Notes: generated from the sequence alone by a model not told the origin. Positions 4,117 to 47,926 are shown, counted from the stretch's first letter. The stretch is DNA of 64,000 nucleotides from Mizuhopecten yessoensis (GCF_002113885.1 NW_018407700.1:1520545-1584544), one strand, 5' to 3'. Made by a program: numbers and translations.

Positions 4117-5302
4117 ACTTTCGTTTTTAGTGTGTTACTTAGAATGGTATAGTGAGCCAAAACGTATTTTCCACACGTAAATGGATTTTCCTACTTTCAT
4201 TTTCGCTTTACAAAACTGCAATACATGATTAAAATTCCTTAGCTTATAATCAGATTAAAAAATGGGAAGCATGAAAAGGATATTACCTTCGCATTCGAGA
4301 AGTTGATTTTAAAAACATTTTGGGATCGAAAGTATAATTTAAAAACAAAAATCTGTTCAAAAGGGTTGTTTCATTATGAAAATTTTCCTGTATATTTCAC
4401 ATTCAAAAATAGAAGAAACAACTGACCATCATGTTTTTATGGAATAGCAGTTTATTTTATGAATAATGTCTCATAAATGTATCAAATAATGTATAACACC
4501 AATATTCAATTTTAAAATTGTACTTAAGTTTCTTTTAAAGTACCCAATGGAAATAAGCTCTCAGCTTTTGGGTTATCCTAGGTAAAAGGCTGCAATTTCT
4601 GTGAAAAAAAATTAAACTTCTGATCTCATATGCATGTATTAGTTGTACTGAATGTTGTTATGTTATTGTACAATCTAATGCTGTACTTTTACTCTATTCT
4701 GTGATATTCATGTATTGTTATATGCCTATTTTTTACCTATATTATTATTATTATTATTATTATCTTAACATTCTCTTTGGATCGTTCATCCTTCTCTTGA
4801 ATTAGACAAGTGGAACATGATATACGTTTTTCACGTAGCAATGTTACCTTCCTGGGTGAGTCAGCCTGATTGGTGTTTCCAAGATATATATACGTGTGTG
4901 ACTCATTTTCGATATGCTACTTTCGCTTTCGTTTTTGACAGTCGTATGTTACTGTTTTTACACATAATCAGGTTATGCATTTTTATAAATTCATATGGAA
5001 TTACATTGCTTAAATACATGTTTTCCTATATATTTCATTTTGGAAACATGATAGTCTGCAGATGGTGGTAAGTAAACTATTTCGTGCTTCGATTTGGAAT
5101 GATTTTGAAGTTTGTTCCGTGCAACATCACATTTAAATGCTCTTATACATATTGTTCCATTCCATGTCATAGGAATGGGTTTCATATAAGTTCAATAACT
5201 TTTGTCCATCATTTTGATAAACGTCAATAAAAATGATTAAACATTTAACTATATATATGTTAGTAAGAAAATAACTAATGTTTTATGTTTACTTTCGTTT
5301 TC
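4117..5302. promoter_or_regulatory. IRF/ISRE-like, AP-1 and kB-like motif cluster upstream of USP paralogue 1
   Basis: ACTTTCGTTTT 4117-4127; GGATTTTCC 4183-4191 beside ACTTTCATTTTC 4193-4204; TGAGTCA 4857-4863 and TGACTCA 4899-4905; ACTTTCGCTTTCGTTTT 4919-4935; ACTTTCGTTTTC 5291-5302. A candidate non-coding exon ends at 5067 (GTG|GTAAGT). Confidence 0.55.
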
Positions 5303-6113
5303 CCTTATCCTCTGTATCTAAATCGTACTCACGAGGAGGCGGTATGTCACTGCCATAAATATATGTTTTAAGGAAAATTAACATCACAAAGATTTATTCT
5401 TCTTTTTGCAATTATTACACCACGCTTCTTTCCTTCTTACAAGCATTATGCATACTTAAGTCAATGAAATATGACGCAGTAACGTTGACAACAGCTAACA
5501 ATTATTTAAACATTAGATACTACTCTGTTAACAATATTTATGTGCATAATTAGCCCTGGTTAATATAACACGGTATTGTCAGGTCATATACATGTCAGAC
5601 TAACAATTATGGTAAACAAAGTTGTTAGTCACAAATAGGATGGTTGCCTGAGATAAAGTGCACCCGGACTTCTTTGTAGAAAACATATCGACAAATGAAT
5701 ATGGATAAAGCTATGATCTGATTTATGAAGTAAATGTTTAGTACGTTGAATGTGGTTGTGGTCATAATAGTACTTTCCATAACCTTTAAGACAATTGAAT
5801 CCAAATAACTAACATGCTATGAACTAAGGAAAGGCATATTGGGAAATAGACATGAATGATGTGAGAATAACGTGATTAAGAATGTTTTACTCGTAAAATA
5901 AGAAGTTTATACTTGGAACTAGTAAAAATCTTAATTACGGTTTAGTTCAGAATATTTTTTCTCTCTCTTTACTTAGTTCGATTCTTCACTATTCCAAATG
6001 TGTATATTAGCGTAATATTAAAGTTAACCAGTGTTCAATTATGTTTGTATCAACACACTTCAATAACACATTTCAGAGTTACATGTTTGTATTGGAGGCA
6101 GCATTGATTCAAT

Positions 6114-9100
6114 ATGGTAAGTGTTTCAATTTGTAAGTTTATTTCAACATGTTAGAAAATGTTAACATCATAATACATATACTCTGACAATGCTACGAAT
6201 ACGTTTTTCACAATGTTTCAGATATGATATAGAATAATCTTCATGTATTTTACTTCCTGTGCTCAAATGAAATCCATCAATAATTACTCAAATAAAACTA
6301 TTAACTTGATCGATATTTATGATTCATGTAAAAGAGTTATTTTTTTTTATTTCCAATAAATACCTTTGCTATTTTTCAAAGGGGTCAACACCAGCTAAAC
6401 AACCTTCGAGACACAACAGCATCAATCAACCAGCACAAGCGGCTGATAACATCCAACCGTTAGAAGTAGTAAAGAGCACTGGAAAACTACAGGACAATGG
6501 TAGTGTATGCTAGTATAGATATTACATTAATTACGTTCTGTATCACTTGTAGGTGTCGTTACGTTAAAGATTGCATTGCAATATGAAGAAAAACATATAA
6601 AGTTCTTATTTTTATCTTCCTTTATAATAAATGTATATAAATCTTGACATACAGAATCAGTCGAAGAGCTCAGAACAGACCGCTTGAAAGACAATCACAA
6701 TCAAGGAAAGGTATCATATGCAATTATAACGTTATCATTGACAAGATGTAATCCCTTTCACTGGAAAAAACAATTCTTTATATGTGAATAGGAACCAATT
6801 TGTAATTACATCAAAATAAAGTTGCTCTTCATAAAAAGTAAACTAACACATTGACTAACAAACCTACAGTTATGTTGTTTATATATATCTAAATCGAATC
6901 CTGACCTAAATGTTTTACTAAACAGATTTTACTGTCCTCTTGAGAACTGTTCAATCTTAGGTTGTTTTACAACAGGAATTGGACGTCCATGAAGCTATTT
7001 TTAAACAGAAAGAAGCAGGACACGTTCCTACGGATGACAATAGTAGAGGTAAACACTTTAAATAATTGTATACAATAGCATTCAATTACAATTATGAAAT
7101 AGTTTTATATGTTATAAAACAATAATAAAAAGTCAAGGAACAATCCTTAATTCTAATTTTATATGATATTATTTATCTTAATTTGCTTCCGCAGACTCAA
7201 AAGAATTTGGAGAATCAATATCAACTTTACCAGCAAAAGATCATCCATCGGACAGAAATGACGAACAAAAGCTGGTATACTTTCTTGTAAAGCGAGAATG
7301 TTCAAAGTCTAATTAAAGGGAGATAACTCCGACATGCTTACTCACTTACACGTACAATATAATGCCCATATAAAGACACACAAGAAGTTGTGCATCATAT
7401 TGCCCTGTAAAAATGCGTTTTATTTTCCTATTCTTGTGTTGAATAGTTCAGAAAATATTTCTAAACAAATGATTTTTTGTGGACTATATCAGCGTTTTTC
7501 TGAAAGACATGAACCTGGTTATTCGCTATATTATTGATCAGTTCAATCAAAAGATATGTTTCCTTTACCATGATTCACAGATTTAGCAATGTGTTCCTCA
7601 TTTCATGATTTACTTGCATTATTGAAAGGATTTCTTGAAATATTCATATTACTATAATATATTTAATATCTTTCGACCATATAACAGGAAATTTCAGAAA
7701 ATGTACAGAATATGCAACAGGCAAACAAAGACATTACTTCCGAAGACAAAGGTATGTTGAGATGTGACACGGTATCAGAAAAAATAAGTAATACCTAGAA
7801 CACAGGTTTACTATGTAAAACAGAACATTTTGTATTAATGCTTTATTGGAATTCTCTGAGAAAGGAAATGCTAGCTTTATATTTCACAATTAATTTTTGT
7901 CATTAAATTTTAACTACATCGCGATACTAAGGAAGTGAATACGATAGAGTGGTTGTGTATTTAAGGAAACAATTATAAATAACTTTTCTGTCTTATTTCA
8001 GACTTACAAGTACTATGTTTCTACAGTGACAATGCAAGCAAAGAGAAAGACGATTCGGACAAAAGTGATGGAAATCTGATAAGAGTATCCTTTTTTTTCG
8101 CCAAAAATAAATATGTATTTCAATAATGATTTTAATGTTTCCTTCCTTAACATTGGTACAGGGCCTTCCCAATATAAAGGCAAGCTCATGTTACATGTCG
8201 ACACTCGTCCAGGTATATGTTTATTTTGCTAAAGAATTCGGGATATAACGTACTTTGAATATGTTTTGTAAGAAAATGTATCGACCGTGAAAATTATATC
8301 TATATGATAAATATAACTTTGACAGTAATATTAATATTGATATATACATAGTTATAATTTGGAAATGATATTTACATGCTCAGCTGGATGTCGATTCATT
8401 TTACTTTCCTTAAGATTATTTAATTGATATGTCTACGGATAACATATAAGTGATTACATCATAACTTTCCGGTTAAATAGGTATTGGCACAGACACCTGG
8501 CTTCACCGACAAACTTCTCCACAACAACCAGGTAGGATACACACGATCCTCATTTTATATACCGTGCTTCTCCATTTTTACAATTGATGAAGGTATTCTA
8601 TTTTCTGAAGTTTAAGATTAATACTAGAGGTCGTGATCATGTAAGTTAAGTTCATTATCTAAATATTACACTGATGATATAACTACTTTACATATATTTT
8701 TCAAATACATTGATATCACATGCAATCAATGTATTTCATCAGTTCCTTTAAAAAAAATGTGGCATATTTCAATTGATCTCACAGAAGACGTATTCTTGGG
8801 GTGATATATTAATGTCGTGCTATAATGGTATTTAATTCTAAATACATCTTAAATCAATGTACATTTATTATAATTACAGAACTGCCACGTGGCCAGTACC
8901 TTGATTAAGCTATTTGTTGAGATAAATGATACACAACAGGGGAGTTGTGATACAGAAGAAGATTTACACTCTCTTGTTTCCGACTTACAAAACAACATGT
9001 CCGAAAGGTACCTGCAATTATTGTGTTTAAGTAACTATTTATAGATAAGAACAACGTGTTTCAGTTACTTTGGATATTTGATATATTTATTATTTTGTCA

Positions 9101-11672
9101 TTTCTATTTTACAGGGATGAGAGTTACAAGAGTGGAAATCAAAACGACTGTCACTCCTTATACCTGTGTTTAATGGATGCATTAGATGAGGAAATCAAAG
9201 GTATTCAAACGTGTTATTAAGCTTATATATATAAGTACATATATTGGTAATATACAATAATGTAAAATAAATATAATTAATAACTATACAGGTAAAAGTT
9301 TACAATGGATACATAAGATTAGGAAATCAAAGGTATTCAAACGTGTTATTAAGTTTATATATATATATTATATATAATAATATGATATGAATAAAATGAA
9401 TAGTTTGACAGGTTAAAATTAACAATAGTTTAGGAGACGTGAAGTCTTTACAGTTTCTATGACTTTTACAGGATGCACGTCATTATTTGAGGGACATGCT
9501 CGAAACATATTCAGGTATTCAACGTGCGACCACGTAAGTATCTCTCCCTTCGATTTCATAACAAATGATGTATTACTGATGGGTCTATATTTATATTAAC
9601 AGTAGTTGTTATAAAAACAAAATGAATTCTTTGTTTCTATAAAAACGATATCAAACCCTAAACAATCTGTTTATAATAACATTTACCTATCATTAAATAG
9701 TTCACAAATTGATATGATAAATCGAATAGATTTCTTTTGCTGTGATTATTCAATCCTTTTAATTTTCAGGTTGAAGAATGTCAGCCAGAATGTATAAGGT
9801 CTCTGCTTTTAACAGTGGATGAAGTATATGTAAGTTTAATGCATCTTTAACTATGTTCTACTTAATTACTGATAAATTTATTATGATTTATTTATATAAG
9901 AAGCAATAATTATGATAATTAAAAGAAAATAATAACAATAATGAAAAAATAAAGAAACTGGCTGTGGCGAAAATACTATATGATACATTTAGTTAAGATT
10001 TGCATCATTAACTTACAAAACAATCTAATTAGTGGCAACATAATAGCAGGTTAAACTTTGTTTCAGTCTTCCGTTGAAGACAGTCTTAAGCTTTTAGAGG
10101 AGATAGTGACGTTTAACGACGCTGAGGTACCATGTAGAACATGCCTGGATGAAGAAAAGCGTTACGAAGGTAAGCAAGGTTATCCTGTATGTGCGCGCAT
10201 TAATAATCTCTGTTTACGTGCACTTTTAATTCCAGTAACGAATCATTATAGACAGTAAATATCAAATGCATAATTAGACAGTAATGACTATCATTCAACA
10301 AAATAATCACTTGAACTTTTAATATCGTGAATTGAAATTACTTAAATTGTATTCATGTAAGTAATCTGTACATAAGTTTGTATAATATAACTTTGATGGG
10401 AACGAAAGATAACTTTCATATGTTTTTTTAATATCCCGCATTAAATATGCTAATTGAAATAAAATAAACAAATGCATGCTGATCGGGCATATATTTTGCA
10501 GACACGTCAACATACAAACAATACATAGTTGCGAAACCACCGGAGATACTTGTTTTACAGCTGGCAAGATTTAAACAGGTAAATCTTTATATCAACACCC
10601 GGTGTAGACTGTATTTTAGTCTCTGTGAATATTTTCTTGTCTAATAAAGTAAAGTTAATCTAATATGTTGATAATGTAAATTGTCGAAAGCCTGTATACT
10701 TGCTAATATCAATAAATAGATAGGAATAAGAAATAATCATAGCGGCTGACAGCCAGACTATAGCCGGTTATATCATGTTTCATACGTTAAATTATACAAT
10801 TTGTCTAAATTTATGTTGTAATAATTATGAGAATATAAGTGATTCTAAATTGTTCCTCATGTGTCGTTTAGGTAATTGAGCTAGATATGACTCAGTCAAG
10901 TCATCAATGTTTGAAAACGAAACTACAGTGTATAACAAAGTGCATGTAGTGTAGTATTAAGTATATGAAATATAGATCAAAATATATATAGTGTATCACA
11001 AATTGTATAAAGTAATTATTTCAAATAGCATATCGTGTATCAGTGTATTAAAAAGTGTAAATTATGTGTTTTGCAATTGATACATTGTGTATAACAAACA
11101 TATACAGTATACAGTATAGTAAAATGTGTTTGCTGTGTATGTAGTGTATTACAAAGTGAAACTAGAGATCTAAAAATTGTTTGGAAAATCAAAACTTATT
11201 ATGTATGTTTTTACCAGGATATGGTCTCAGTGAACGAACCATACAGAAGACTGTACAAGTACCAGGGAAATGTACATTACCCTTCTGACTTATCCCTTCC
11301 CACCAGCATAGAGGTAATCAGACAATCGTTTGAAAGTGAAACAAGATTTAGTTTTTTATTGAAACATACTTCTTTCCTGAGCCGTGTTTGAAGATATAAT
11401 TTTAGATAAACACGTTGATTCTTTTTATTCAGGGACCGTCTGGCCGGGAATGTGTACATGTATGGTACGAATTATATGGCGTCATCTGCCACGAGGGAAG
11501 CCTTGAAGAAGGACATTACTGGTGTTATGTGAAGAAAAATGGATGGAACCCAGATAACTTGTACCTTTGGCACCTTTGTGCCGACTCCTACGTCAGAAGA
11601 CTTGACGTCAATGAGGAGTGGCCTCACTCGCCGTTCGCGTACCTGCTATTCTACAAACGACTGAAACTGTGA
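6114..11672 (+). CDS. USP-family deubiquitinase paralogue 1 (~476 aa): MGSTPAK N-terminus, low-complexity linker, C19 domain
   Basis: Phase-consistent exons: 6114-6116, 6382-6499, 6655-6710, 6976-7048, 7195-7274, 7688-7751, 8002-8084, 8162-8212 (Cys box GLPNIKASSCYMSTLVQ), 8481-8531, 8880-9007, 9115-9200 (QNDCHSLY), 9472-9533, 9770-9829, 10067-10169, 10502-10578 (PPEILVLQLARF), 11218-11313, 11433-11672 (His box YELYGVICHEGSLEEGHY...WHLCAD...AYLLFYKR). AATAAA at 11773. The start codon and linker exons are less certain than the catalytic exons. Confidence 0.88.
9189..9353 (+). repeat. Local ~132-bp tandem duplication that copies an exon end and its 5' splice site
   Basis: aggaaatcaaag|gtattcaaacgtgttattaag occurs at both 9189-9221 and 9321-9353. 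Confidence 0.85.
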
Positions 11673-13416: not shown

Positions 13417-13619
13417 GGGAAATTACGCTTGAATTCTGCAAATAAAACGTGTCATTGAAATTCCTACTTTCACTTTCGTTTCAGCGTTATCTGGATAAAA
13501 TTAGATATGACAAACACGTTTTCCTAAACCGCGAGTAACAAAACGAAAGTACGTTCCGCGAAACCTAAGTAAGAAGAAGGGATAGTGTCCTTATTTGAGC
13601 CTACAGAGAGGAGGTAAGC
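13417..13619 (+). promoter_or_regulatory. ISRE/IRF, GAS and kB-like motifs plus putative non-coding first exon of USP paralogue 2
   Basis: GGGAAATTAC 13417-13426; ACTTTCACTTTCGTTTC 13466-13482; AAAACGAAAGT 13540-13550; TTCCGCGAA 13554-13562; donor GAG|GTAAGC at 13613/13614. Confidence 0.6.
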
Positions 13620-29700: not shown

Positions 29701-32700
29701 TTGAAGCTTTGAACATGTTTTGCCTAATTTGGTAATTATAATGATCATTTGATGGCAATTTGATGGTATGAAAATAATGATGGAAACAAAAGTTTATGGC
29801 GAACTGGTCATTCATAGGGGCCTACCAAATCTGTGTAGAGAAAATGACTATGAGAAAAGCTGTTATTTTTCGTTATTTCAATAAATCCATTTGAGCAGTG
29901 TTTAATTTGGCATTTGGTCCCTTCTTCTATTTTAAAATACAAATTTATTTTTTGACAATAAATTTGATCTGTTCTGTAAAATATCATTGAAATGACTCAT
30001 GTGTGCGTATGCCTTGTACATATGTAAGAGCACTTTTTCCACTTTCATTTCTCATCAGTAAGGTTGAATCAAAAGGAAGTCTTTACGATTAATTGATTTC
30101 AACGAATCGCTCTATACTGACATTAAGAAATGTGCAGAAGAAGATATTCGCCAATTTTGTCATTTTTTCCCCCCGTTGTTTTTACTGAGAAATAACAATA
30201 ATAGTGTTTTTATTTATTTGGTATTTCGTCAGTTTCCTTAAAATAAGACGACAACTTAAGTGATACAAAACAATAAAGAACAATTTGCTTCAAGGTCTTA
30301 TGAAATAAGGATAGTGATAAACCTGTTTAAATCATGTACCATTTCCCTCTTTATCTACAGGTCCTCGGAAAAACGCCTCAGCTAAGTAAATGTTTAGGAG
30401 GAAACGTAAGTTGAGAAAAAGAATATCATCTGAAAAGAGTTATAAGAGTTTATTGTACAGAAGGTTTCATATTATTCTGAGAACACTTAGAATAAAACAT
30501 GAAAATTACATTTGTTTCAGTAACCACTTTAATACTGAACTCTATGACAAACGTAACGACATATAATGCTTCTCTCTCATCCTTCGTAATGTAATTTCAG
30601 CCTCTTCTACCTGGTAATCTGTCGCAGTTTAAATGCTACTCTAGAGCCTGTTCTAAGACCATTGAAGAAATATCAACTACGAGATTTCACTGTGTTCTAT
30701 CATTAACGATTTGTTCACATTGTCTTAGAAAATTGTAACCTCCGTGATTTACTCGATTTGACAGACAGCTGTCACATGTACAGGTAAAGGCTACATTTCT
30801 GGAGCACCAACCGTCCTGTCCGGATCTTATCAAGAAATGTTTTCTTGTCATGCGTTAATTTTCTGTATTAGTTCAGTTGAAATTACATTTTTGTGTTGTA
30901 TTATCTCATGTGGTTATCATTACAGCCCACAAGGAGTGCATCCCTTTTAAAAGCAATTGTGGACGAACTGAATACAGACGACGGTCAAGTCAACAGTCAA
31001 AACGTCCGTTGTTTGCTCCGTTATGTTTTCAATAGGTATTGTTGTGTTCTTTATTGTCAATATGATGCACATATAATCCGTAAATAATACAATATCAATG
31101 ATGTGCTTACAAAACAATTCAGAACGTTTCAGGTTTGAAATTGAATTTATAGGAAAATTTGCCTTTTTCAGAGGATATATTGTAGACGTGAATGAGCAAT
31201 TGTTTTAAGTAAATGATAAAAATAATGAGTCAAAGTTCATTTTATAAATTAGTTTACTTCATTTTAGGGACGACTCATTCGTTTTGGGACACCAGAATGA
31301 CAGTCATGCATTTCTTCTTTCCCTACTTGACTGTGTAAACAACGATTCAGGTAATCAAACTTAAACATTTGTACTTAAAAAGTGAGAATATGAAACTGCA
31401 AACCAATGTTTCAATAACAAATCTTATGTTAGATTTAATTATTTAGAGTAATTTACATTCGATTGCAAATGTAATTTTATTTATGGCCAAATGTATTATA
31501 TTTTAAAGATATCCTCAGCTGAAATATGCCTTAAAGTCAAAATATTTGTAGTTACTTCATAAAGGTTTGAAAGACCACCACTTATTTTCAGCCATTGCTT
31601 CCAACGGGTACCAACATGCAGTAAATAAAAACATCTGGAATGTAATAAACCCGCCGAATCAAACAGACATAGTTCAGTTACATTCGGAATCAAATTATAC
31701 CAGCTTAGAAATAATTTCAGGCGGAATTTGAATCAGCGGAAATGCCCCTATAGTACAATGCTTTACTTTGACTTTATGTTGAGGTTCTCAATAAAAAATA
31801 TAAAAAAATATGTACCGGAGGTTCCAATTGTCTTTTCGTATTGATATTATGTTCCGACTTTGTGTTTTAACATTCTTAGATATATGTATTTCTCCACTTA
31901 AATTATTTAGGGAAACAACACATGAAGTATAAGATATAAAGCCAATGGTTGAACCCAAAAACAATCAGTAGTATTCAATGAAATTTTATCTACCAGTGTT
32001 AAAATAGGCATAATGAAGTGGAACTTAAATTACGGTGGCACAAAAGCCGAAGGTCGATGACACAAAGGAAGAGAGTTTAAAATTGTTGTGTACCTTGTAA
32101 TGTTTTAGTATAAATCTTTTCTGATTTTCTCCAATTAAGGAAATTCATATGGGTGTAGTATGGTAATAATCCAGGTTGGTGTGTAGATTGTGTTGGTATT
32201 ACTCTTAAGTTAACCATTCGCCGAATATTGTTATAAATGACAATAGCTATGTAAATATTTCGTTTTGCATTATTGTAAGTTGTAGATACATGCCGACTGT
32301 TTAGTGGCAAGATGACGAGTCGTTTCACGTACAACACGTGCAAACACGTGAGTAAGCAATTTTTCAGAAAAAAGTTCAGCCAAAAGTATGTTAAGCAGAA
32401 GGAAAAAAAGTAAAGCTATCCATTAAATTTGACACTGGAGGAAATAAATTTCATTTAAATTTCTAAAAGGCGTGTTGGTTTTCTAAATCTATATACCGTA
32501 AAAGAAATTAAAAAAAAAAATCTATTATTGTATTCATGTCCTAGCTTTAATTTACACAGGTGGAGTATTCAGGCGAACAACTCTTTTACAGTCTACTGAT
32601 GCCAATTAATAACACACATGTAAGACATTTCGATTACACATTTGCTACCAGGACAAACTTTTCAAACTGAACATACTAGCAGCTAAATGTTTGTGTCGTT

Positions 32701-35700
32701 ATAATTATATAAAGGTGCGACGGTACTTACTAATCGCAATGTGACATGTGTATCAATTAAATTTTCCAGAATGTACATTATTAGATAAATGTTAAAATCG
32801 TCATGCGATAATAATTTGAAAGAAACAACAGTTTAGATTGTATATTTTTAGTAATGAACTAATTTGCCAGTTACCATTTCAAAACTCAATATTCCATCAA
32901 CGTGTCTTTTTTAGACGTTGGATGATTGCATTAATGCATACTGCGAGGAGGAACATTTCCCTGACAACCTCCTTTGTTGTCGAGAGTGCCATGAAACTAA
33001 AGCTGGTATATATTTCCTTTTTTGTCGCTCTTATATTTTGATTCCCAGTTTTATACTTTCCTGTAAATGATATATCAGGAAAAAAATTGTGTAAATTCTT
33101 CAACATATTTAAAATATTTATAGTACATTTGGATGCTCATTTAAATGATTTCACGTTACAAAACATCCCAAATACATTTTTTTTTTTTTTTTTCATTAAT
33201 TAATTTTGGTAAAAACGTATTTTATAGCAAATTCGATATTGTGTGCATTCAATCATGTTTTAATTTCAAAGCAAAGTAATAATGTTTTGTTGATTATCCA
33301 TTTACTCTTGGTGTAGACACAGTTACATCCAAGAAGTTTGTTTTCACAAAACTTCCCGAAGTATTAGTCCTACAAATGGGCCGATTTGAAGAGGTAAGTA
33401 GGCATTTAGATCACGAACTCAATAATGTAGAATGAAAGATATACACCTTCTAAAGAAATTTTATGAATTTAAACGGCTATAAGAAGCATCGAGATCATAT
33501 TTGAAAAAAAATATAATGATATTACTTTCTTTTATTTATATATTAAAACCTACCTACCTTAAACATTAATCCGTGACTTGATTTTCGCAAAAAAGGACAA
33601 TGAATTTGAAAAATAATTCTAAACAAACGTTTTTGTTTTTAGTACACTGATGAGTCAGTTCTTAAATAGACAAAATTGCCATATGATGCCGTAAAATGTT
33701 GAATTTGTTTGACTTTCTACTTAAAATACGATTTTTCAAAGGTGTTTTCTTTCCTCATACCTCGAATGACTTATTTTCTTCTGAATTATTCTTGCATTAT
33801 AAAAGAACCATGTTAGTAAAATTCAAGTTCAAAAATGATTTCACATTGCGGTGGTTAACCTGTTGTCTGTTGGTGTATAAAGAGCTTAAGTGATGCATAA
33901 TAAACTGTGGGTAGATGGATATGGTTCCTCAATACATTTCTGAAACGAACATGAGCGAATTCCCAAAGGTATTGTTTTGACAATTTTAACTTCTAATTTA
34001 GCTTTTCTTGTCATAGATTTCGACCCATTAACATATTTATGTGTTATTAGCTGTATCTATATGATTTAAACCAAAGTACTCCAATCATAGTATACTCGTT
34101 TTATTTATAATTAATTACAAAAGCAAAAATAACAGTAAATGTATCATGTTGTATAAATAAAAGTAGTACCTGTGGTGGCGTAGGCATATGTTCCCATGAT
34201 TTTGACAAATCGCAGCACCTTTAGGGTTAGTTACACATTTGTAGTACCATATTTATGACATGGCCGTAAGACATAGTAAAATCGGTCAGTTATGTGATAT
34301 AGACATATAAAATCACATTACGCAGAACTACAACACGACAGAAAATAAATAAGCACACAAAGACTGATATTAATCTGTCATAATCAATATTTCGGCGATG
34401 ATGATAGCTTTGCATGTTTGTATATTTCAAGCACATGGAATCCCATGGGACGATTATACGGAAAAAAACCACAAGGATCAGTTTTGAAGAAAAGATTCAT
34501 TTTGACCTAGAGAAAATAGAGGAATCTGGGGTTCGTAAAATGTTACCTTGTAGTTATTATTTAAAACATACCTGAAGGTGTTTTGTTCATTTGTTCATTT
34601 TAGAGAATCACAATAAAAATAAGCCTCGGGAAAGACTAGCAAAATATATTACCTGTAACTGAGTGAGATCAGGTTATCTCAGTCGAGGGTTAAGATTCTT
34701 ACGCCTCGGTTGGGATGTTACAGAATCTTAGCCCGAGACTGAGAGAACCCGATCTTGCTCAATTACAGGTAATTGATTTTTTTTCTCGCACCTTTAGTTC
34801 GAAAGAACTATCAAATTTTGCTAAAAACTAAAAGTATCCTTCGTTGGGCATCAAATGATAATGACCTCTTCACTACTTAAGCTACATTTCAACGCTTCCG
34901 GGTAAAAATGTTGTCTGTCCTTACATGGATTACAACGTATTTCACAGTGTAGATTATATTTTATCTACAACATCAAATATATAACAACATCAAAACTACA
35001 TATGTAACAACAAAACAGAACATTTATAATGCAAATTGTCAATTTCAAGCAGTTAACGCGCGGATGAATACTTTGACATCGACGATCGAGATAGAAAAAT
35101 CTAGCATGGGGTATGACGTGGGATATCTCTGTCTGAGGTGCGAGTAAGGTTTATCTTGTCACGGGTCAATACCTGTCTTTCACGGGCAAATATGGGAGAA
35201 CACCTGGTCTTACTCTCCCTGTAGTTTCGCAAAGGTATCCATGTTAATCTTAGCTTAATTAGTATGAACCTTGCTGGGGTGTTTTAGAGTTTGAGCTCGA
35301 ATTATAGTTTTGTTAACACTTCGGTATTCTCTTGTTGTCCTCCTAGTATAGTTAAATTAGCGATACAAGAAACATCAGCCTCTTGTTGTCCTCCTAGTGT
35401 AGATAAATTAGCTATACAAGAAACATCAGTCTCTTGTTGTCCTCCTAGTATATATAAATTAGCGATACAAGAAACATCAGCCTCTTGTTGTCCTCCTAGT
35501 ATATATAAATTAGCGATACAAGAAACATCAGCCTCTTGTTGTCCTCCTAGTGTAGATAAATTAGCGATACAAGAAACATCAGCTTCTTGTTGTCCTCCTA
35601 GTATAGATAAATTAGCTATACAAGAAATATCAGCCTCTTGTTGTCTTCCTAGTATAGATAAATTAGCGATACAAGAAACATCAGCCTCTTTTTGTCCTCC

Positions 35701-36585
35701 TAGTATATATAAATTAGCGATACAAGAAACATCAGCCTCTTGTTGTCCTCCTAGTGTAGATAAATTAGCGATACAAGAAATATCAGCCTCTTGTTGTCTT
35801 CCTAGTATATATAAATTAGCGATACAAGAAACATCAGCCTCTTGTTGTCCTCCAAGTATAGATAAATTAGCGATACAAGAAACATCAGCCTCTTGTTGTC
35901 CTCCAAGTATAGATAAATTAGCGATACAAGAAATATCAGCCTCTTGTTGTCTTCCTAGTATATATAAATTAGCGATACAAGAAACATCAGTCTCTTTTTG
36001 TCCTCCTAGTATAGATAAATTAGCTATACAAGAAATATCAGCCTCTTGTTGTCTTCCTAGTATATATAAATTAGCGATACAAGAAACATCAGCTTCTTGT
36101 TGTCCTCCTAGTATAGATAAATTAGCGATACAAGAAACATCAGCCCTTTGTTTTCTGTTTGAAGGAGTTTATATGTTCGATTGCACTATCTTACACTTTC
36201 TGGGTGATGATTTAGCAACATACTATTAAGAGATATATATCATATTCATTTGATGTAATATGTCTGTCACTTACACTTCAGTAATACTTACGTCTTAACG
36301 ATATTTGAATCATTTAACACTAATCACCTTTATTTCTCACTGTTTCGTTTTCAGAAAAATACAAAGTCCACTTCAAACAAGACAAGATACTCCTATGAGT
36401 TGTATGGTGTTGTCAACCATTACGGAAGTATGGCAGGTGGTCATTACACAGCAACTGTCAAAATGGAACGAACTGACCGCTGGTACTTCTGTAGTGACAC
36501 TTGCGTTAGATCGGGCTCTAGCCCAGCTAAAAAAATGGATGGGGGAGCATACCTGCTCTTCTATCATTTACATCATGTACTGTAG
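14742..36585 (+). CDS. USP-family deubiquitinase paralogue 2 (~950-1020 aa): degenerate C2 domain, repetitive low-complexity linker, C19 domain
   Basis: N-terminal exons: 14742-14784, 15077-15157, 15775-15821, 16013-16042. C2-like exons: 18585-18712, 19452-19560, 19957-20130. Linker exons: 21759-21821(?), 22119-22247(?), 22559-22966, 23752-23937, 24176-24239, 24535-24611, 25174-25308, 25728-25791, 26104-26180, 26573-26636, 27528-27580, 28383-28499, 28728-28791, 29076-29113. Catalytic exons: 29356-29403 (GIANLGNTCYANSVLQ), 30361-30405, 30926-31035, 31268-31350 (QNDSHAFL), 32286-32347, 32560-32619, 32915-33005, 33317-33393 (LPEVLVLQMGRF), 34432-34530, 36355-36585 (YELYGVVNHYGSMAGGHY...WYFCSD...AYLLFY). 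The catalytic part is secure; the join to the N-terminal exons is inferred from phase continuity. Confidence 0.82.
16250..16760 (+). mobile_element. Degenerate non-autonomous Helentron/HINE(Pearl)-like element
   Basis: Begins tttttgttcacctg, followed by a tccgttcgtctgtccg microsatellite-like tract and GGGG-rich internal motifs. It resembles the element at 60780-61380. Boundaries are approximate. Confidence 0.35.
18367..18489. mobile_element. Fold-back (long imperfect palindrome) MITE-like element
   Basis: gcaaatattgttatgtcctatcacacaca...taaagccc pairs with gggctttaa...tgtgtgttataggaccataacaacattgc around a ~3-nt centre. Confidence 0.7.
18585..20130 (+). other. Three exons encoding a degenerate C2 domain within USP paralogue 2
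   Basis: Spliced peptide LGYLSLSASHKKRLVKMEDIRWTLP...DVWVQLKIFQNEKQVGKVVTAKQRTDVVNCIKFRGQLKTKIERDCPKTTVSLCVWTTKTSKKFFRKPDKSLGRVDIKLDSF...IYLHP tracks the C2 strand pattern (GxLxLSL; DPYVKL; KxKT; LxVxVW; DxxLGxVxIxL). Most Ca-binding aspartates are absent. Confidence 0.65.
21380..21700 (-). mobile_element. Possible decayed LINE ORF2 C-terminal fragment
   Basis: Peptide ...QLKLYDNPTFRYHEDAF...RFLEIRLSSLELDI loosely resembles the KLxxY...RLSSxxLxI motif at the end of LINE ORF2. Weak match. Confidence 0.3.
23700..29120 (+). repeat. Four-fold tandem duplication of an exon triplet (A, B, C) with its introns
   Basis: A exons begin TKETQ/TQETQ (23752, 25174, remnant ~26290-26370, 28383). B exons are all 64 nt, phase 0-1 (24176, 25728, 26573, 28728). 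C exons are phase 1-0 (24535, 26104, 27528, 29076). Shared intron motifs include gtgacaccacttgat and tttagggtca. Confidence 0.85.
26780..27505. mobile_element. Non-autonomous DNA transposon with TIRs and TTAA target duplication (Kolobok-like)
   Basis: TTAA-tGGGACAATTTAgTGAAGTA ... TACTTCAaTAAATTGTCCCt-TTAA. The equivalent intron of the other triplet units lacks it. Confidence 0.7.
34648..34773. repeat. Long inverted repeat (~52-bp arms), MITE-like hairpin
   Basis: attacctgtaactgagtgagatcaggttatctcagtcgagggttaagattct pairs with agaatcttagcccgagactgagagaacccgatcttgctcaattacaggtaat. Confidence 0.8.
35195..35340 (+). mobile_element. 3' fragment of a dispersed retroelement-like repeat (copy 1 of 3)
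   Basis: Shares gaacacctggtctta and tttgttaacacttcggtattctcttgttgt with the copies at ~40020-40350 and ~54240-54432. Confidence 0.55.
35329..36150. repeat. 51-bp minisatellite, ~16 copies, in the last intron of USP paralogue 2
   Basis: Unit tcttgttgtcctcctagtatagataaattagcgatacaagaaacatcagcc. Confidence 0.97.
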
Positions 36586-37194
36586 AGAATAATGATAGTG
36601 ATGTTTAGAAAGTTTATTGATATAAGTTCTTAGATTCTACTTGTTTAACGGAGCTAGATATATTCAATTATAATCAAGTTCAAGTTCTTTATTAAAACAT
36701 TCTACTCTTCGTCTATTTACTTTAATGCTTGATATATAAAGGAAAGCATTTGGAAAACGAAATTTTATTTATGTATTGATTTACATACTCACCTTTTACA
36801 TTTTACCAGTCACAAGAGAAGGTTTGGTTACATAAATCAAATAAACAGAATAATGATTAGTTCTTTTAAACAATATACGAAACGGAAGAACTGAAATATA
36901 AGCTTTCTGCGTCGAAAAGCCAATGACGTCATTAAATAGCAATGATTGATGACGTCACAACAAAGCTTCGTAAAATAGTACGTCACAGCACGTCACAACT
37001 ATCTCTCTCCACTCCCCACTTTAACATTCCAAACAGATATTCAGACCCCTATCAAAGTCACCAACAAAATTAATAAATCTCAAACACTAATTTTGTCGTA
37101 CTCTATATTGCAAGATATTCCAATTTGTTGGTACTTAATGGTTGATAGGATATTAGTTTGCTTTCCCATAACACTGTTCTTTCTTTGAAGGTCA

Positions 37195-37835
37195 CGTTTT
37201 ATGTATAGAATTGTATTGCAACTATGTCACATCTTTATTATATTACTGTAGTGTAACAGGGTCATGTCTTTATATATAGTTCTGTAGTGTAACTGGGTCG
37301 TGTCTTTATAAATAGTACTATGGTGTAACTGGGTCATGTCTTTATATATATTACTGTAGTGTTACTTGGTAACATCTTTATATATATTACTGTAGTGTAA
37401 CTTCGTCACATCTTTATATATCTTACTGCAGTCTAACTGGGTCGTTTAATTACAAATCTTTATATAAATTGCTGTTGTGTAACTGGGTCATGTTTTTATG
37501 TATAGTACTGTATTGTAACTGGGTCATATTTATATATAAATAACTGTAGTGTAACTGGGTCATGTCTTTATATATATAACTGTAGTGTAACTGGGTCACA
37601 TATTTATACATATAACTGTAGTGTAACTGGGTCACATCTTTATGTATAGTACTGTAGTGTGACTTGGTCACATTTTTATATAAATAACTGTAGTGTAACT
37701 GGGTCACATCTTTATATATATTACTGTAGTGTAACTGGGTCACATCTTTATGTATATATCTGTAGTGTAACTGGGTCATGTCTTTATGTATAGTACTGTA
37801 GTGTAACCTGATCACATCTTTATATATATTACTGC
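37195..37835. repeat. 36-bp minisatellite, ~17 copies
   Basis: Unit tgtagtgtaactgggtcacatctttatatatattac. Confidence 0.95.
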
Positions 37836-38321: not shown

Positions 38322-38353
<32 letters not shown>

Positions 38354-38357
38354 ATAT

Positions 38358-40350: not shown

Positions 40351-40731
40351 TGGTGTAAACCAAACAAATGAAAAAAATAGAGAGAGCTGATGAAGAGGCG
40401 TCTTTGTTATATATTTTTAAGTGTAGAAGAATATATATAATTGAACAAATTTGAAACAAAACATTTTCAATATATCTGAAAGAGAAAGCACTAGTACCCC
40501 TAATGATATAAGGTAGCCTCAAGCTGTAGTTATTTAATGCTTGTGTATCATATCATCTGAAGAGCGAGAAGAGATAAATTATTAGATATTCATTTAGTTT
40601 GGTAAGATATACGTATGTTTTCCTTATAAAAGCTGCCACGTAGCACATCAGGTCAAGTGACGTGGCGAATGGAATCAATACATAAATTCCAGATAGATAC
40701 GAATATAAATAGATCCTAAGCAAACCTTGAC

Positions 40732-41037
40732 TTCCGAGAAATCCTGGACAGTTGGCGTTATTTATAATCACAAATCCCTATATGACGTTGCATTAAATAT
40801 AGATCGATGACGTGTCTGCATTTTCCGAAAATCAGCGAAAATATTTTTAACACATATTTCTGTCCTAAGTAATACTTTTGGTTTCGTTTTGCCTTAAAAT
40901 ATCACTGTACTTTCATTTTACTATAGTTTTCTTAGACAACAAAACAAAACATACGTATTGTACACATGAATTCCAAAATGACATCCTGTAAGCTGCAATG
41001 TAATGTTTGCGGAATAGAAACTGGACAAATGGTTAGT
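40732..41037 (+). promoter_or_regulatory. GAS, CRE-half and IRF-like motifs plus putative non-coding first exon of USP paralogue 3
   Basis: TTCCGAGAA 40732-40740; several TGACGT nearby; ACTTTTGGTTTCGTTTT 40874-40890; ACTTTCATTTT 40909-40919; donor ATG|GTTAGT at 41031/41032. Confidence 0.5.
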
Positions 41038-41559
41038 ATATTTTTCCTGATGAGCTTTATTCATATTTCGTTTAATCAAATTTAATACTTGCTTCATATC
41101 ACAGGTAAACTAGTCTGGACTATATAGAGACGTGCTTAGGATTATAATTACTTCAACCACTTTGCAAACAACAAATGCTAAATTGTAGACTTCACGTCAC
41201 AAAGATGTATACCACAACTTTGCCCTTGTTCAAAGGAACCAAAAGTATGTCATATTATTTTTTGTCTTCAAATATCACTGCATATTTATTAATTAATTAA
41301 TAGTAGTGTTTAGTTTTACCATCAACTCAAATTAAATCGTGCAAATTTGGTTTTTTATATTGATACGTTTTTTCTGTCCATATCTATTGTGTAAGCTTCG
41401 CCATGTCCTAATCGTTGACAGCCTGCGATAGAAGTCGAAAATTGTCATCATATCCATTGCAATACCTGTGCTGAAAAGATGGTAGTAAATCGAAAGCTTC
41501 ACAGAGGAAACCGAATACCGCATTACAGATGTTTGGTATGTGGCCGGTTTGGTAGGAAA

Positions 41560-44500
41560 ATGCTGGTAAGTGCATGCTTTCTATTTACTTAAAAATGGAC
41601 ATGTTACAGCTGTATATGGTCATCAAAAACACTATTTTAAACCTTGCTGTTCGTTTTGATTAATCGGTGTATTATCATTATAAAATTGTCCAACTATCTT
41701 TATTCTCATTTCAAGGTTTCCCAACAATCACACGAGTATTACCCAGCATCACCGCAACATGACCACTCTGCAGGTAAGTGCATATAATCGTTGAGACGGG
41801 TGCTTATTTTAAACATTGAGTGACACTTTTTGTTATAAGCTCTTAGTATGGCACCCGTAGTTTTCCTACACTGGTATACTAATAGAGAGAAAGAGAAATG
41901 TGTTCTAAACAAAGCAATAACAAACCTAGTTATATATGTTTGTGGTGCTGTATAAGTATTATAATCAACATACAGTATTCTATCTATTTCATTATGCATT
42001 TTCTGCTCCGATTTAAACTTTTCAGCACAACAATCCTGCCGTGTACGTAAGGTCAATACATCTATACGGGACCCCGGAAACATGGATCTTAGTCACACAT
42101 ATCCAAGGGTAGGAATAATAACATCTGCTATCATACAAAGATTGAATTACTCATAGTTCTTTCTCTACATATCTACGGGTCAGTAAGAATGTGTCAACTG
42201 ATTAAATCACAGTAAATGGTGTGTTTTTTTATATATGAAGTCAGCGCCGCTATTAATATACAGTGACATTTCTAAAGGGTATACAAAGTAAGTTATATAT
42301 ATATACATATATATACATCAGGTAAAAGTTATATATATATACAGATAATTACATCAGATTAAAGTTATATATATACAGATAGATACATGAGGTAAATTAT
42401 CTTTAATTATTGATCATTATATTAACGCCATGTATACATTATTTATCATATGTATGCCAGACCGATGTAAAATTAGTCATAAAGATCCCCCCCCCCCCCC
42501 CCTTTTACACCAACCAGATATGTAGTTAATTTTCAAAAGGTGATATTTATTATCTTACAAATAAATAGACTGGCTAACGTCAATAGCGGAAAAGACACGG
42601 ACAGAAATATCTAACATTTTGGAGACGGCTGACTAAATAAAAAGTTGTAATACATAGAAACTTCACTGTTCTAAAGAAGTATTATCGTTATATCTGTGAT
42701 ACTGGATTTCCACAGTTTTGTTTTCTCGTTTTCTGCGATTTTTAAATGTATATATGTATACGTTTATTGACTGAGGAGATAACGGCAGAAAGAAAACGTG
42801 AGTTTGTTTGTATATCGAATACCGAGTATAATATAAAATTGTCGAGATAAAGTTTCTAAAACATTAAGTTGCCAATTGATATGTAAAAGTGTTCACATTG
42901 GAAATAAATCGCGATACGATGCCTATCTTCAGTTTTTTTTACTTATTTTGACGAAATCGACCTTTTTCATCACTGGTGAATATAGCGTCTCTTTCTTGAA
43001 TGATCAAGCGTTGCCATGATGAACAGATACAATCTATGTTTGTGTACTTTCCTTATCAGGAAATCATACCAACTGTACTCTCGTTATGGATTGACTGTCG
43101 GTGTGGTTCCGTGAAATGAACGTAAACGGCTCATATAAACTAGCATATGTCAGAGTAGGATGAAGTCCCGCTTAAGCTTAATGTCTGTTTCGTATGATTT
43201 AAAGCACAGAAACATCACTATTAAAACTTAACAGGAATATGTCTTAACAACTTATATATCAAGCTTATGATAGCGTTTCTCTGTCCTCATCTCCCCTGAT
43301 GTGAAACTTGTTGAACTGATTTATTAAAGTCCAGAAACAAACCTATTAAAATCCTTCACCAAAGGAAATATTGGCCAGTCTATCAATCCTTTTCTTCGGT
43401 TTATGTCCAATATCTATAGTAACGATAAAACTAATCTATTTCGAATTTTGTGCTTTAAACCCGCTTGTGAAAGCCCTTTATTTTGTTAGGGACAATCCAT
43501 GAAACTCTTGACTACAGCGACAGAGATATTTTTCATATTTTTTGATAATGGGACGTAATTACAGTAATTAAATTTACATGTTTTCCAGGGACTACAAAAC
43601 TTTAAATTGACATGTGCCATCAACGCAGTTGTTCAGGTAGGAAAGTTGTTTCCTTTTATATGTGTACTTATGTGTACATACTGTTATGTCGCCAATAAGA
43701 TCTTGCTCAAAAGTAGTAATGATTGTCAATACAATAAATATAAATATATTGTATAAATAAAGCATTCACTGTGTGGAGTTCTTTTTACTTTGAACTACTG
43801 TGAACGTAAATGTAGGCACTGTGGTTGCTTGTAATGGTTTTTTTCTTTTGCAATGTAGAATTGTTATCTACTGAAATAATAATACAACGTGATATTGTAT
43901 CCAACTTAATTATTGCATCTAAATGTAAACAACGTTTGATTCTAATTTTACATGTGGAGTAATACATTGATAATTTCTCTGTATTTAAAGGTCTTAGCAC
44001 AAACTCCAGGATTTTATGATGCAGTGTTTGATTTTTGCATCAAGGTAAGAAGACGTTTTATAAAAACATACACCAGAGTGCAAGGTGTGTGTATTTTAGT
44101 ACGTGAAAACTGTAAATGATCACTCCATTGTTCTCTTTTAACTCATAGTATAATGGGGATTTCAACAAGGGTCAAATGGTGAAAAATACAACAGTTTGCA
44201 GTAGACAAACAAGGTGTATTCTACAAATTGATTATGTTTTATCTTCTTCTTTAATATTTCAGAGTAAGAAAACGGATTTGGCACACATTCTTTTAGATAT
44301 CATCCTAAATGTAACCCATGCACCAGGTCCAATCAGTGCCGAGGCATTACAAGCAGAAATCAGTGAAAGGTAAAAATAAATTAGTGAGCAACTCATGTTA
44401 TATCAAACTATGATCAGTGTTACATGTATCAGTACCCAATGTACTAAAGCATGACCAGTATTTTCATGATCTATTGCATTTATGTATGATGATTCTTACC

Positions 44501-47500
44501 AGTAGCTAAAAACTAAGACATATTTATAAATATGAAATTTTAAAAAAAAGTACATAAAAGTATGCGTTGAAATAAAACCAGTCAGCCAACATGAGGCTAA
44601 CGCGGAGCTCTTTAAGTCAACAGGTGGCAAAGTAATGTGATCAAAAAATTGAAATGGTTCTCAGCCATTTATATGACAACAAATGAAGCATTCTTCTTCC
44701 GCTCAGTAACAATCAGGCCACGTTTACTAATTGTAAGCTGTTTTGTGATAATTTTTCTTAAATAGGGAGGATGACTTTCACTTCTGGAGACAACATGACT
44801 GCCATTCCTTTCTCCTGTGTCTTTTAGAGACTTTGAGAGAGGATCTGGGAAAAGGTTAGACACAGTTTTATAATTTAGTTCTACATCATCCACTATTTGA
44901 TATTAATGTATAAATAGTTAATAGAAATACGAAGGCAGAAAGCAGCTGTTTAAAAATTTAGATTCTATATGTAGAAAGCAAAATAATGTTAATATTGTAC
45001 TGCACTTCATATGATTGTCTGTATAATTTAGACCACTATATTCTTTATCATTTTGATTATAACTGGTTACTGAACGATTGTTATCAAAGGTTCCGTCGAG
45101 TTTTCTTGTTTATTGAATTTCTTTTTCTTAAAAGAAAACTAAGTAATAAACGCATATTTATTGATATACCGTTTCTGTTTTTTAGAGAGCATGGGCTTAT
45201 TCACAGGGCAGATTAAGAACCAGTTTGAATGCCGGAGCTGTTCACATGTAAGTTTCGAAAACTGTGTCCAATTTCTGTCATATGGTGTTGATGATGTGGT
45301 ATACAATTATTCAATGCAATTTTCTATTAGAAATGAAAACATTTTATACGCTACACGATAAAAAATATATGTATTTACGTCACTTTATGATGCTATCTCT
45401 GCTTTATTATAATGTTATATGCCCGATATCTAGTATTTGGTCAATCCACCATGTCTTCAGTTAATTATAATATACTTATATAATTTTCAGATGGAATGTT
45501 CCGAACCTCAAGACTTTACATCGTTATGCATTCCCTTAACTGAGGTAATTAATACAGAATTAACATTGCTATAAAAAGCGGAATACACAGGTTGCATTAT
45601 TGTTGCCCTTTTTTATTATTTATATTTTCCATATATCTTTATGGTTCTACTCACTGAGAGTGTGATGACATCATGACTCATATTTAAGAGATAGGTAAAC
45701 ATTGAAGTTATCATTAAAACAAATAAAGTAGGTTATTTATTCTCTTTACTGTATTCAATGTTAATGGAAATTTTAATATTGTACATGCAGAGATTGATCC
45801 ATTTCACAAAGGTCATTAGACAAATGCCTTCTCGCATTGCTAATACAGAATACATTTTGCCAATAGCTAGTGTGGACTCTTTTGATGCAAGTCTGTTGTG
45901 CAGAATTTCATATTTGAATGACTGAAACTTTACAGTAATGCCACATAAATTAAATAAATCCAAATTTCGCCTTCGAACAACTATTTACAGAATTCGGTGG
46001 AAAAGGGCTTAAAAGTTCTGTTTCAAAAGGAAACACTGACGGATTCAAAGATGGTATGCCGATCTTGTGCTAAAGGTAATAGAGTAAGCTTTCACACGTT
46101 AATAAACTTTCCAAAAATATTATTTCCAGAGACCACCTTCAATATTTAACAGCATTCTTTCGAGTGTGACTTCAAATATTGTCGATTAATATCTACAGGC
46201 ATATTTCGCGAAATGAAGTACACGAAAAAATATGGTGGTTTACAATTATTAAACTCATTGCGAAGTCGTACTTGTAATATAATCATATGTCTAAAGGTAA
46301 CAAACTGTGTCGCACACAGTTAACTCTACATAATCTGCAGAATAAATAGATAAAACAAGTTTAATATTCATTTAAGAATTTTAAAAATGTGTGTTTGTTT
46401 CGGTTAATAAGATATTGTAAAAACATAGGACATGTTGTAAAATTCTACGGTTATTTTATGTTTCCTTTCATTTTATAAAGGTGAAAATATCTTGACGTTG
46501 TTATATATGATATAATTATAACAGATAAAAGAATCCAGAGACGGTATTTGTGTAATAAAGAGCTACTGATTGCGAGAGCTCCCGACGTCCTTGTTCTTCA
46601 ACTCGCCAGATTTAAAGAGGTGTGTTTATATAGATTAGGTAACTTAAGGACACTGGTGTAAACCCCATTGAATGAACTTTTATCGTCAATCCAGAAATAT
46701 CAAGCTAGCTTTTTTGTCACCAGATTTCAGTACAAATGTGAAAAATATGATAAAAGGTGTCGGCTAACGCAGGGACATTGTATACCAAAACAGGGTAACA
46801 GATTTTTTTTGTTTAACGATGGTGATTTCCATTTTGCTATAACGATATATCAAAGTAAACTGTGACAAGCGTCATCGTCATCTGGAGTTAAATATTCTCC
46901 AGTTGATGAGTCCATGCTATATATTTTTCGCCATTCCCCTTTCGCTGTACATGTTTCGGAATACATTAGACATGGTATTTCATTATTTTGTCATTTAACA
47001 ACAATGTTGAGTTCGAAATAGATGAAACAGACATATGGTGTAGTAAAATGTTTACTTTGTTCGGATTTCTGCATCGACAATTTGTTTTTAATTGACTCCT
47101 TAATACGTATTACAAGTGATTATTCTTCACATGTGCCACGTTATGGTTTTATTTGTGTTTTCATTGAAGGTGAGAACTACAAATGGACATGTAGTAATTC
47201 AAAAACAACAAAGCCTGTTCCCGTACAACGATAATATGCATCTGAATCCTGTAAGTTATTAATAGATACTACAGTAGTAAATACAGTCCAACTTGCTCAT
47301 GCGACCACTTTCATTAAAAGATCACTTGTGTTTGGAGACCATTTTGTCTTTTTAACTTTGTGGTAGTTTCACTGCGAATTGAATCTGTATTATATCCCAT
47401 CTGCATTTGGAGATAACGCCTTCAAATTCCTAATGGCGGTCTCGTTATGCAGATGTGACTGTAGGTGGGGTTAACAGTAGAAAAGAACTCTTTTATTACC

Positions 47501-47926
47501 AGTGATTTTCCCCCTTGCACTCTGATATCAATTACTCCTTTACTAATTATTTTACGTTGTTAGAAATATCTGTGTAAGCTCCCTCCTTCCTTAGTCATGG
47601 CCGGTTTTCTGTTTTATTGATTTATGATTCATTTTCTCTCTTGTTTTCAGTGTGGAAAATCTCCAGTTAAATACAAGCTTTTCGCCATCATCTCTCATCT
47701 GGGAACCATCGAAGGCGGTCATTACGTATCCTATATACGGACATTACAGGGCCAGCACGATATAACTAGGCCTACCAATAAAGACAAGGACAAGCTTGGC
47801 CACGAAAGTCACCACTCCAGTACGTGGTACCACTGTACTGACGACATTGTCACGCGATTGAAGCCAGACGCTGGGTATCCTATTTGTTCCCATGCCTACC
47901 TCTTGTTTTATCACAAACTAAATTGA
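41560..47926 (+). CDS. USP-family deubiquitinase paralogue 3 (~318 aa), essentially the catalytic domain alone
   Basis: Exons: 41560-41565 (ML, inferred), 43589-43636 (GLQNFKLTCAINAVVQ), 43991-44044, 44263-44369, 44766-44854 (QHDCHSFL), 45186-45247 (CRSC), 45491-45544, 45991-46075 (CRSC), 46525-46619 (APDVLVLQLARF), 47170-47250, 47651-47926 (YKLFAIISHLGTIEGGHY...WYHCTDD...AYLLFY). AATAAA at 48118. Confidence 0.88.

Follow-up and report, generated by a model that had tools for sequence, protein, structure and literature searches.

A tandem trio of ubiquitin-specific protease genes behind putative IRF-type promoter sites in the scallop Mizuhopecten yessoensis

Vertebrate USP18, a member of the ubiquitin-specific protease (USP) family, is an ISG15 protease and a feedback inhibitor of type I interferon signalling, and its gene is driven by an interferon-stimulated response element (ISRE). 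Canonical interferon is, to our knowledge, absent from bivalves, so the drive on comparable genes there may come directly from interferon regulatory factors (IRFs); we know of few direct targets of the bivalve IRF-dependent antiviral response that have been defined at the promoter level, and of no described mechanism that shuts this response off. In oysters, poly(I:C) and ostreid herpesvirus 1 (OsHV-1) induce CgIRF2 and CgIRF8, and both factors activate reporters for human ISRE and IFN-beta (PMC5557890); a cGAS/STING-TBK1-IRF axis has also been described there (PMC8218723), and shrimp Vago is IRF-driven (PMC4602278). Here we analyse a 64-kb stretch of the genome of the scallop Mizuhopecten yessoensis (GCF_002113885.1, NW_018407700.1:1520545-1584544; hereafter the window) that carries three co-oriented USP genes, g1, g2 and g3, each behind ISRE-like motifs. 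On balance, we think it rather probable that these genes are a bivalve-specific USP trio with conserved IRF-type promoter sites, which IRFs would switch on during antiviral challenge and whose products would trim ubiquitin.

Like USP18, the scallop genes encode compact USP-domain proteins and have ISRE/IRF-type promoter sites, and at 433-476 aa the g1 and g3 products come close to it in length. Unlike a USP18 orthologue, they do not have USP18 as nearest relative: against solved structures, a profile of 12 family members gave a plateau led by USP8 and USP2 (4e-43), with USP18 at 3e-30. The third residue of the catalytic triad also differs, and the scallop genes carry extra N-terminal modules. 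To ascribe a USP18-like function to g1-g3, with ISG15 specificity and binding to the interferon receptor and STAT2, would be speculation.

The window lies on public contig NEDP02004373.1, is AT-rich (about 32% GC) and has no runs of N. A self-comparison of all its stop-free plus-strand segments, after which splice sites were placed by hand, yielded three paralogous exon sets near 9.1-11.7 kb, 31.2-36.6 kb and 44.7-47.9 kb. In all three genes, the catalytic part is spread over ten exons with intron phases 0,0,2,1,0,0,1,0,0 and a fifth exon of 62 nt. The coding features are as follows.

6115-11672, plus strand: coding span of g1, 17 coding exons, 476 aa, XP_021362847.1 (P0151)
8162-8212, 8481-8531, 8880-9007, 9115-9200 and 9472-9533 (62 nt), plus strand: g1 catalytic exons 1-5
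9770-9829, 10067-10169, 10502-10578, 11218-11313 and 11433-11672, plus strand: g1 catalytic exons 6-10
14743-36585, plus strand: coding span of g2 in the public annotation, 1071-aa product; predicted catalytic exons at 29356-36585
40966-47926, plus strand: coding span of g3, 14 exons, 433 aa, XP_021362760.1 (P0172); catalytic exons at 43589-47926

The joined frame of g1 is open throughout and the model is identical to the public protein; the 14-exon hand model of g3 (62-nt exon at 45186-45247) likewise translates exactly to its public product. The ten catalytic exons of g2 are a hand prediction, with the 62-nt exon at 32286-32347 and exon 9 (35225-35278) the least certain, and they align over their full length with a Pecten maximus protein (P0202) at 54% identity. 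Pfam UCH (PF00443, cut-off 23.9 bits) matched the g1 and g3 proteins at 119.7 and 134 bits, and the last exons of g1, g2 and g3 at 51.2, 56.6 and 45.9 bits, all above the cut-off. Pairwise identity between the catalytic parts is only 31-36%, and the N-termini are unrelated.

Relatives with high scores came from bivalves only (scallops, oysters and Solemya) in word-indexed searches, and a profile search returned 24 bivalve clusters at E<=1e-72, with the next matches only at 1e-34. In a maximum-likelihood tree with a small, mostly unnamed outgroup set, short of a full metazoan USP phylogeny, the 17 bivalve rows formed one clade (support 100/97). Within it, g1 fell together with the orthologues from Ylistrum and Argopecten and with a second copy from Mizuhopecten. 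The Pecten gene and, weakly (80/71), an oyster clade grouped with g2, and g3 was a long unresolved branch; the position of g2 makes the split between the paralogues an old one. The ten-exon layout with the 62-nt exon is also present in Saccostrea, and a near-identical layout occurs in the second Mizuhopecten copy, which makes the layout an ancestral trait of the family and g1-g3 old paralogues. Two marks are specific to the family: a Q-V-L-x-Q-T-P motif after the Cys box, and a C-x-H half of the zinc ribbon.

Among solved structures, the best sequence matches of the family profile and of g1 and g3 singly are cores of the human USP2/USP8/USP21 type, as well as USP16, USP36 and yeast Ubp8, with which the scallop proteins share the order of Cys box, QxD, zinc ribbon and His box, but from which they differ in the two family marks and in the plateau of scores. 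Among solved structures, g1 alone matched USP16, USP36, Ubp8 and USP2 at 1e-10 to 1e-7 and did not reach USP18 at E<=0.001, while g3 matched USP46, USP2, USP8 and USP16 at about 1e-13. Assigning an orthologue by way of solved structures was thus abandoned, for single proteins as for the family profile, since the plateau singles out none. NCBI names disagree among family members (USP8, USP2-like, USP27-like, USP36, USP25-like and USP16-like), and such public names as USP8, USP2-like and USP27-like imply orthologies that the data do not support.

Taken together, g1-g3 form a tandem cluster of old paralogues within a USP family that is confined to bivalves and lacks a named human orthologue. Much of this had been anticipated by the first-pass annotation of the window, which described three co-oriented USP genes of shared catalytic layout, strongly diverged in sequence and with different N-termini, as a lineage-specific set in which no copy could be assigned to a named USP; within the limits of the outgroup, the tree agrees, placing the three as mutual kin rather than as orthologues of separate housekeeping USPs. 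Its description of the set as rapidly evolving, on the other hand, finds no support in the old split or in the substitution rates of g1. Between g1 and its orthologues, the ratio of nonsynonymous to synonymous substitution (dN/dS) was about 0.12 in the catalytic part and 0.3-0.6 in the N-terminal part. With dS at saturation (1.2 to >2), only the direction of these values can be used, and it shows purifying selection.

Upstream of the genes, the recurrent element is ACTTTCNNTTTCGTTT (reverse complement GAAANNGAAAGT), of the IRF element (IRF-E)/ISRE type; read as the reverse complement it has the form GAAA-NN-GAAA-GT, with two or three cores in a row. The promoter features are the following.

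4193-4208, plus strand: distal IRF-E/ISRE-like site of g1, one mismatch to ACTTTCNNTTTCGTTT, preceded by GGATTTTCC
4919-4934, plus strand: proximal IRF-E/ISRE-like site of g1, an exact match; the GT at 5068 follows after 133 bp
4984-5067, plus strand: TATAAAT (4984-4990) and a putative short non-coding first exon of g1, with a candidate donor GTAAGT directly after 5067
5977-6117, plus strand: 5' untranslated exon of g1, its last three bases the start codon (ATG, then GTAAGT), polymorphic relative to the RNA contig of run X4
13466-13481, plus strand: IRF-E/ISRE-like site of g2, exact, reverse complement GAAACGAAAGTGAAAGT, directly after GAAATTCC, 132 bp before the GT at 13614
13482-13613, plus strand: stretch from the g2 site to the donor GTAAGC directly after 13613, putatively holding the start site and a non-coding first exon
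13540-13552, minus strand: second IRF-type site of g2, in inverted orientation (AAAACGAAAGTAC), unchanged in Ylistrum and present as tandem copies in Argopecten
40874-40889, plus strand: IRF-E/ISRE-like site of g3, one mismatch, 92 bp before the ATG
40907-40921, plus strand: second ISRE-like element of g3 (GTACTTTCATTTTAC)

Allowing one mismatch at most, ACTTTCNNTTTCGTTT has four matches in the 64 kb against 0.07 expected (4193, 4919, 13466 and 40874), all on the plus strand upstream of g1-g3, a count that is partly circular because two of these very sites had served to define the motif; the independent test lies in other loci. Chosen a priori, TTTCNNTTTC occurs 13 times in the window against 5.1 expected, a number reached by none of 100 shuffles; by these two counts, matches of the ISRE/IRF-E form GAAANNGAAA(G/C)T are commoner there than by chance. 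All that the three promoter stretches have in common is [C/A]TACTTT(C/T)NNTTTCGTTTT; their flanks are unrelated between the paralogues. The sites resemble the IRF-E, ISRE and positive regulatory domain I (PRDI) elements of vertebrate interferon-stimulated and IFN-beta promoters in their GAAA-NN-GAAA-GT form, in their putative position near a transcription start and, at times, in lying beside a kB-like site.

Half sites of kB-like form (GGGAAATTAC, GAAATTCC, GGATTTTCC and AAATTCC) abut several of the IRF-type sites, at 13417-13464 and 4183-4191 in the window, at 8497-8506 in the Ylistrum locus (L002) and at about 9203-9210 in the Argopecten locus (L004). A full GGAAATTCCC stands directly beside one IRF-type site in Ylistrum. 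Full kB sites were set aside for the window itself, where the strict NF-kB consensus (GGGRNWYYCC) has no match and only half sites occur.

Outside the window, the element recurs at orthologues and at other family members. The Ylistrum orthologue of g1 has three matches upstream, and in the Mizuhopecten-Ylistrum alignment about 2 kb of DNA cannot be aligned except for one conserved island, which has the proximal motif of g1 as its core. The gap between motif and donor measures 132-133 bp for g1 and g2 and 136 bp for Ylistrum, whose donor is GTAAGT as in g1. The Argopecten orthologue carries a cluster of ISRE-like motifs within about 350 bp upstream (two at <=1 mismatch, four at <=2), with a GTAAGC donor 168 bp after the motif, and Ostrea edulis has an exact copy 475 bp before the coding sequence and 66 bp before a GTAAAG donor. 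The inverted element of g2 is found unchanged downstream of the Ylistrum g1 orthologue and in multimerised form before a second Argopecten USP gene. The 2-kb stretches upstream of family genes, 9.4% of the 214 kb of loci scanned, held 12 of the 13 motif matches (P about 5e-12, binomial); with the window excluded, a hand count gives eight of nine. The thirteenth match, a triple GAAA-type motif, sits about 84 bp before the coding sequence of a Saccostrea IBR-domain gene (L007, 18473-19863). Because synonymous sites between these genes are saturated (dS >1.2), conservation of the motif is not a matter of inertia.

These distributions show that the IRF-type sites are genuine, are no product of chance and have been kept at promoters of the family in scallops as well as oysters. 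The first-pass annotation, which had placed ISRE-like motifs upstream of all three genes, is thus borne out both within the window and at orthologues or family members in Ylistrum, Argopecten, Ostrea and Saccostrea. Its further proposal, that the motifs precede non-coding first-exon donors at 5067, 13613 and 41031, holds in part: the spacing fits at all three genes (110-157 bp before the GT at 41032 in g3), but the g3 exon that ends at 41031 is coding, with its ATG at 40966 (45-92 bp after the motifs), and the g1 donor has no RNA over it.

From the promoters, we consider it very probable that g1-g3 are regulated by a conserved IRF-type site and plausible that they are immune-induced. IRFs activated downstream of the bivalve RIG-I-like receptor (RLR)/MAVS and cGAS-STING-TBK1 pathways would bind the sites, which appear to lie just upstream of a short first exon, and Rel/NF-kB may help at the adjoining half sites. 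Viral or nucleic-acid challenge would then turn g1-g3 on. The enzymes, whose most plausible role is that of feedback regulators, would strip ubiquitin or a ubiquitin-like modifier off viral proteins or signalling components.

Besides the partial circularity of the window count, several points weigh against this reading. In the literature on bivalve antiviral and OsHV-1 genes we found no report of USP18-like or ISRE-driven USPs. No RNA aligned to 4900-5099, which leaves the g1 donor a candidate; as the RNA contig of g1 stops at 5977, the motif at 4919 is tied to the g1 transcript through its own conservation and that of the donor. The more distant family member of Pecten maximus (P0178) has no motif match within 40 kb. 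As for the enzymes, the position that we take to be the third of the triad, by mapping onto USP2 and USP7, is A in g1, S in g2 and T in g3 instead of N or D, and the pattern W-x-x-F-[ND]-D is absent from all three, so that full catalytic activity is not certain.

Of the other explanations, the one that survives best, though we judge it unlikely, is that the conserved motif is functional but read by a different GAAAGT-core factor, such as a PRDM1/Blimp-1-like repressor, or within a non-immune IRF1/2-like programme, in which case the cue for the genes would be development, stress or tissue identity and not virus or dsRNA. Vertebrate PRDM1 sites overlap with those of IRFs, and conservation shows that a site matters and not what binds it. 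However, GAAA cores in twos or threes with two bases between them, a pattern that is multimerised in Argopecten, are the classical form of an IRF-E/ISRE, and the kB-like half sites beside several copies, together with the full site in Ylistrum, suit an immune enhancer. Oyster IRFs, moreover, act on such elements (PMC5557890).

It is a good deal less probable that one or more of the copies work not as proteases but as pseudo-enzymes of weakened activity, binding ubiquitin in the role of scaffold or decoy. Such a loss would fit the residues at the third triad position, where oyster family members have Asn, and the unusual Cys box of g3 (GLQNFKLTCAINAVVQ). The Cys boxes read GLPNIKASSCY in g1, GIANLGNTCY in g2 and GLQNFKLTCA in g3, and a GHY His box is present in all three. 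Yet in the family alignment the catalytic Cys (C13) and the His (H269) are invariant and the Asp that follows the third position is invariant or nearly so, the catalytic domain of g1 is under purifying selection, and human USP16, USP30 and USP45 are active with Ser at that position.

Expression of g1 was uneven. Three ordinary RNA libraries of about 1.8 Gb each gave 0, 2 and 2 reads on the 6-kb g1 region, against this near silence a fourth run (X4) assembled a single spliced g1 contig of 1955 nt at depth 28.8, and the pattern is compatible with an inducible gene but proves nothing. The contig spans 12 GT..AG junctions, all of which agree with the hand-placed exons up to 10067. Its 5' 138 nt match about 5980-6117 with small indels; over the exon 5977-6117, several substitutions and small indels within 30 nt bring the likeness below 95%, and such polymorphism may also hide the first exon of g1. 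The end of the contig at the acceptor at 5977 is compatible with another exon further upstream. That g1-g3 are ordinary constitutive USPs, with motifs that are chance matches in an AT-rich genome or functionless relics of a duplicated ancestral promoter, is already disfavoured and to us the least credible account, for although TTTCNNTTTC is frequent in the window, some copies lying inside genes, and paralogues derived from one gene could conceivably share a promoter relic, the flanks have fully diverged between paralogues and genera while the motif was kept, in five species the matches cluster in front of family genes, and g1 is nearly silent in three libraries, unlike a housekeeping gene.

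If the IRF-driven reading of g1-g3 is extended to the family, a wider picture can be sketched, which we offer tentatively and regard as possible more than probable. Bivalves would have evolved their own IRF-switched deubiquitinase family, independently of vertebrate USP18, within immune clusters of the ubiquitin system and beside IBR/RING genes with the same motif; its members, each directed to a different place, would include a myristoylated membrane form, a RING-like E3-deubiquitinase fusion and a long-tailed form, acting as a feedback brake on, or as effectors of, an interferon-like antiviral response. Family promoters that have carried IRF-type sites since before the split of scallops and oysters are testable candidates for control of the antiviral response at the level of ubiquitin, a question of relevance to the herpesvirus mortality of farmed scallops and oysters. 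The three paralogues and their orthologues also make up a compact natural set of promoters for reporter and binding assays.

The N-termini give each gene its own character. That of g1 begins with MGSTPAK and continues as an acidic low-complexity region of 159 aa. The same MGSTPAK start is found in Argopecten (L004, 10001-10003), and in Ylistrum the sequence ahead of the annotated start encodes MGSTPSK (L002, about 9962), so the public Ylistrum model (P0163) probably starts at an internal Met. While MGSTP(A/S)K is kept (6115-6117 and 6382-6402 in the window), identity among Mizuhopecten, Argopecten and Ylistrum drops to 22-30% over the remainder of the N-terminal region. We take this start to agree with the N-myristoylation pattern. 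An exon that ends with the start codon is shared by Mizuhopecten g1, the second copy in that species and the Argopecten gene. This second g1-like gene (P0153) lies on a small unplaced contig, NEDP02076808.1 (L003, 7.4 kb), and is 50% identical to g1 in the catalytic part, with exon phases of the g1 type, a fifth exon of 59 nt and a first coding exon that holds the ATG only. An element TTTCGATTTCC is found 340 bp upstream of it, at the edge of the contig.

In g3, the first two exons encode a region with the spacing C-x2-C-x13-C-x-H-x2-C-x2-C-x20-C-x2-C.

40966-41031 and 41422-41565, plus strand: RING-like C3HC4 region of g3

A match to zf-RING_5 here spans the whole profile, at 19.4 bits and below the cut-off of 27.9. 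A single-sequence structure model had a predicted local distance difference test score (pLDDT) of 52.5, too poor for a structure search, and a sequence search for relatives of the N-terminus returned only itself. As a candidate, the RING-like module would make g3 a RING-USP fusion.

The product of g2 has about 780 aa N-terminal to the Cys box, and its annotated coding sequence begins only at 14743. The gene was searched exon by exon; a C2 domain gave no Pfam match on three exon-level translations at E<=0.1. Over 10 kb past the g1 orthologues of Ylistrum and Argopecten, no g2-like coding segments could be detected. Within the N-terminal region of g2, three related coding-like segments of the SQTKETQ type (38-58% protein identity) occur at 23719-23883, 25138-25254 and 28347-28520, with others at 24148-24264 and 28700-28816; they represent repeated exons of the long N-terminus or else repeats within introns. 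The last intron holds a tandem array that is the source of a spurious open reading frame (ORF) of 312 codons.

35329-36152, no strand: 51-bp minisatellite of 16 copies inside g2 intron 9

A second array, of 18 copies of 36 bp, lies just downstream of g2 at 37190-37834.

In oysters, the family is clustered with IBR-domain genes, in Ostrea edulis at L006 26409-35841 and in Saccostrea at L007 4458-7046 and 18473-19863, and one Ostrea gene combines IBR and UCH matches. Outside bivalves, an exhaustive search with exon 10 of g1 was headed by fish 'USP18-like' models with several USP domains, a ranking that we do not take for orthology, as their scores sum six to seven domains at 37-39% identity. Public models from fish (P0003, P0004 and P0006) and birds (P0007 and P0008) are 1300-2000 aa long with three to seven USP domains, some of them clustered under 'USP18-like' names; each has the look of a tandem array of USP genes that was annotated as one gene. 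At the 5' end of the window, an ORF of 185 codons on the minus strand (332-886) has a weak match, below the cut-off, to Baculovirus FP protein domain 2 (E 9e-4) and may be a transposon relic.

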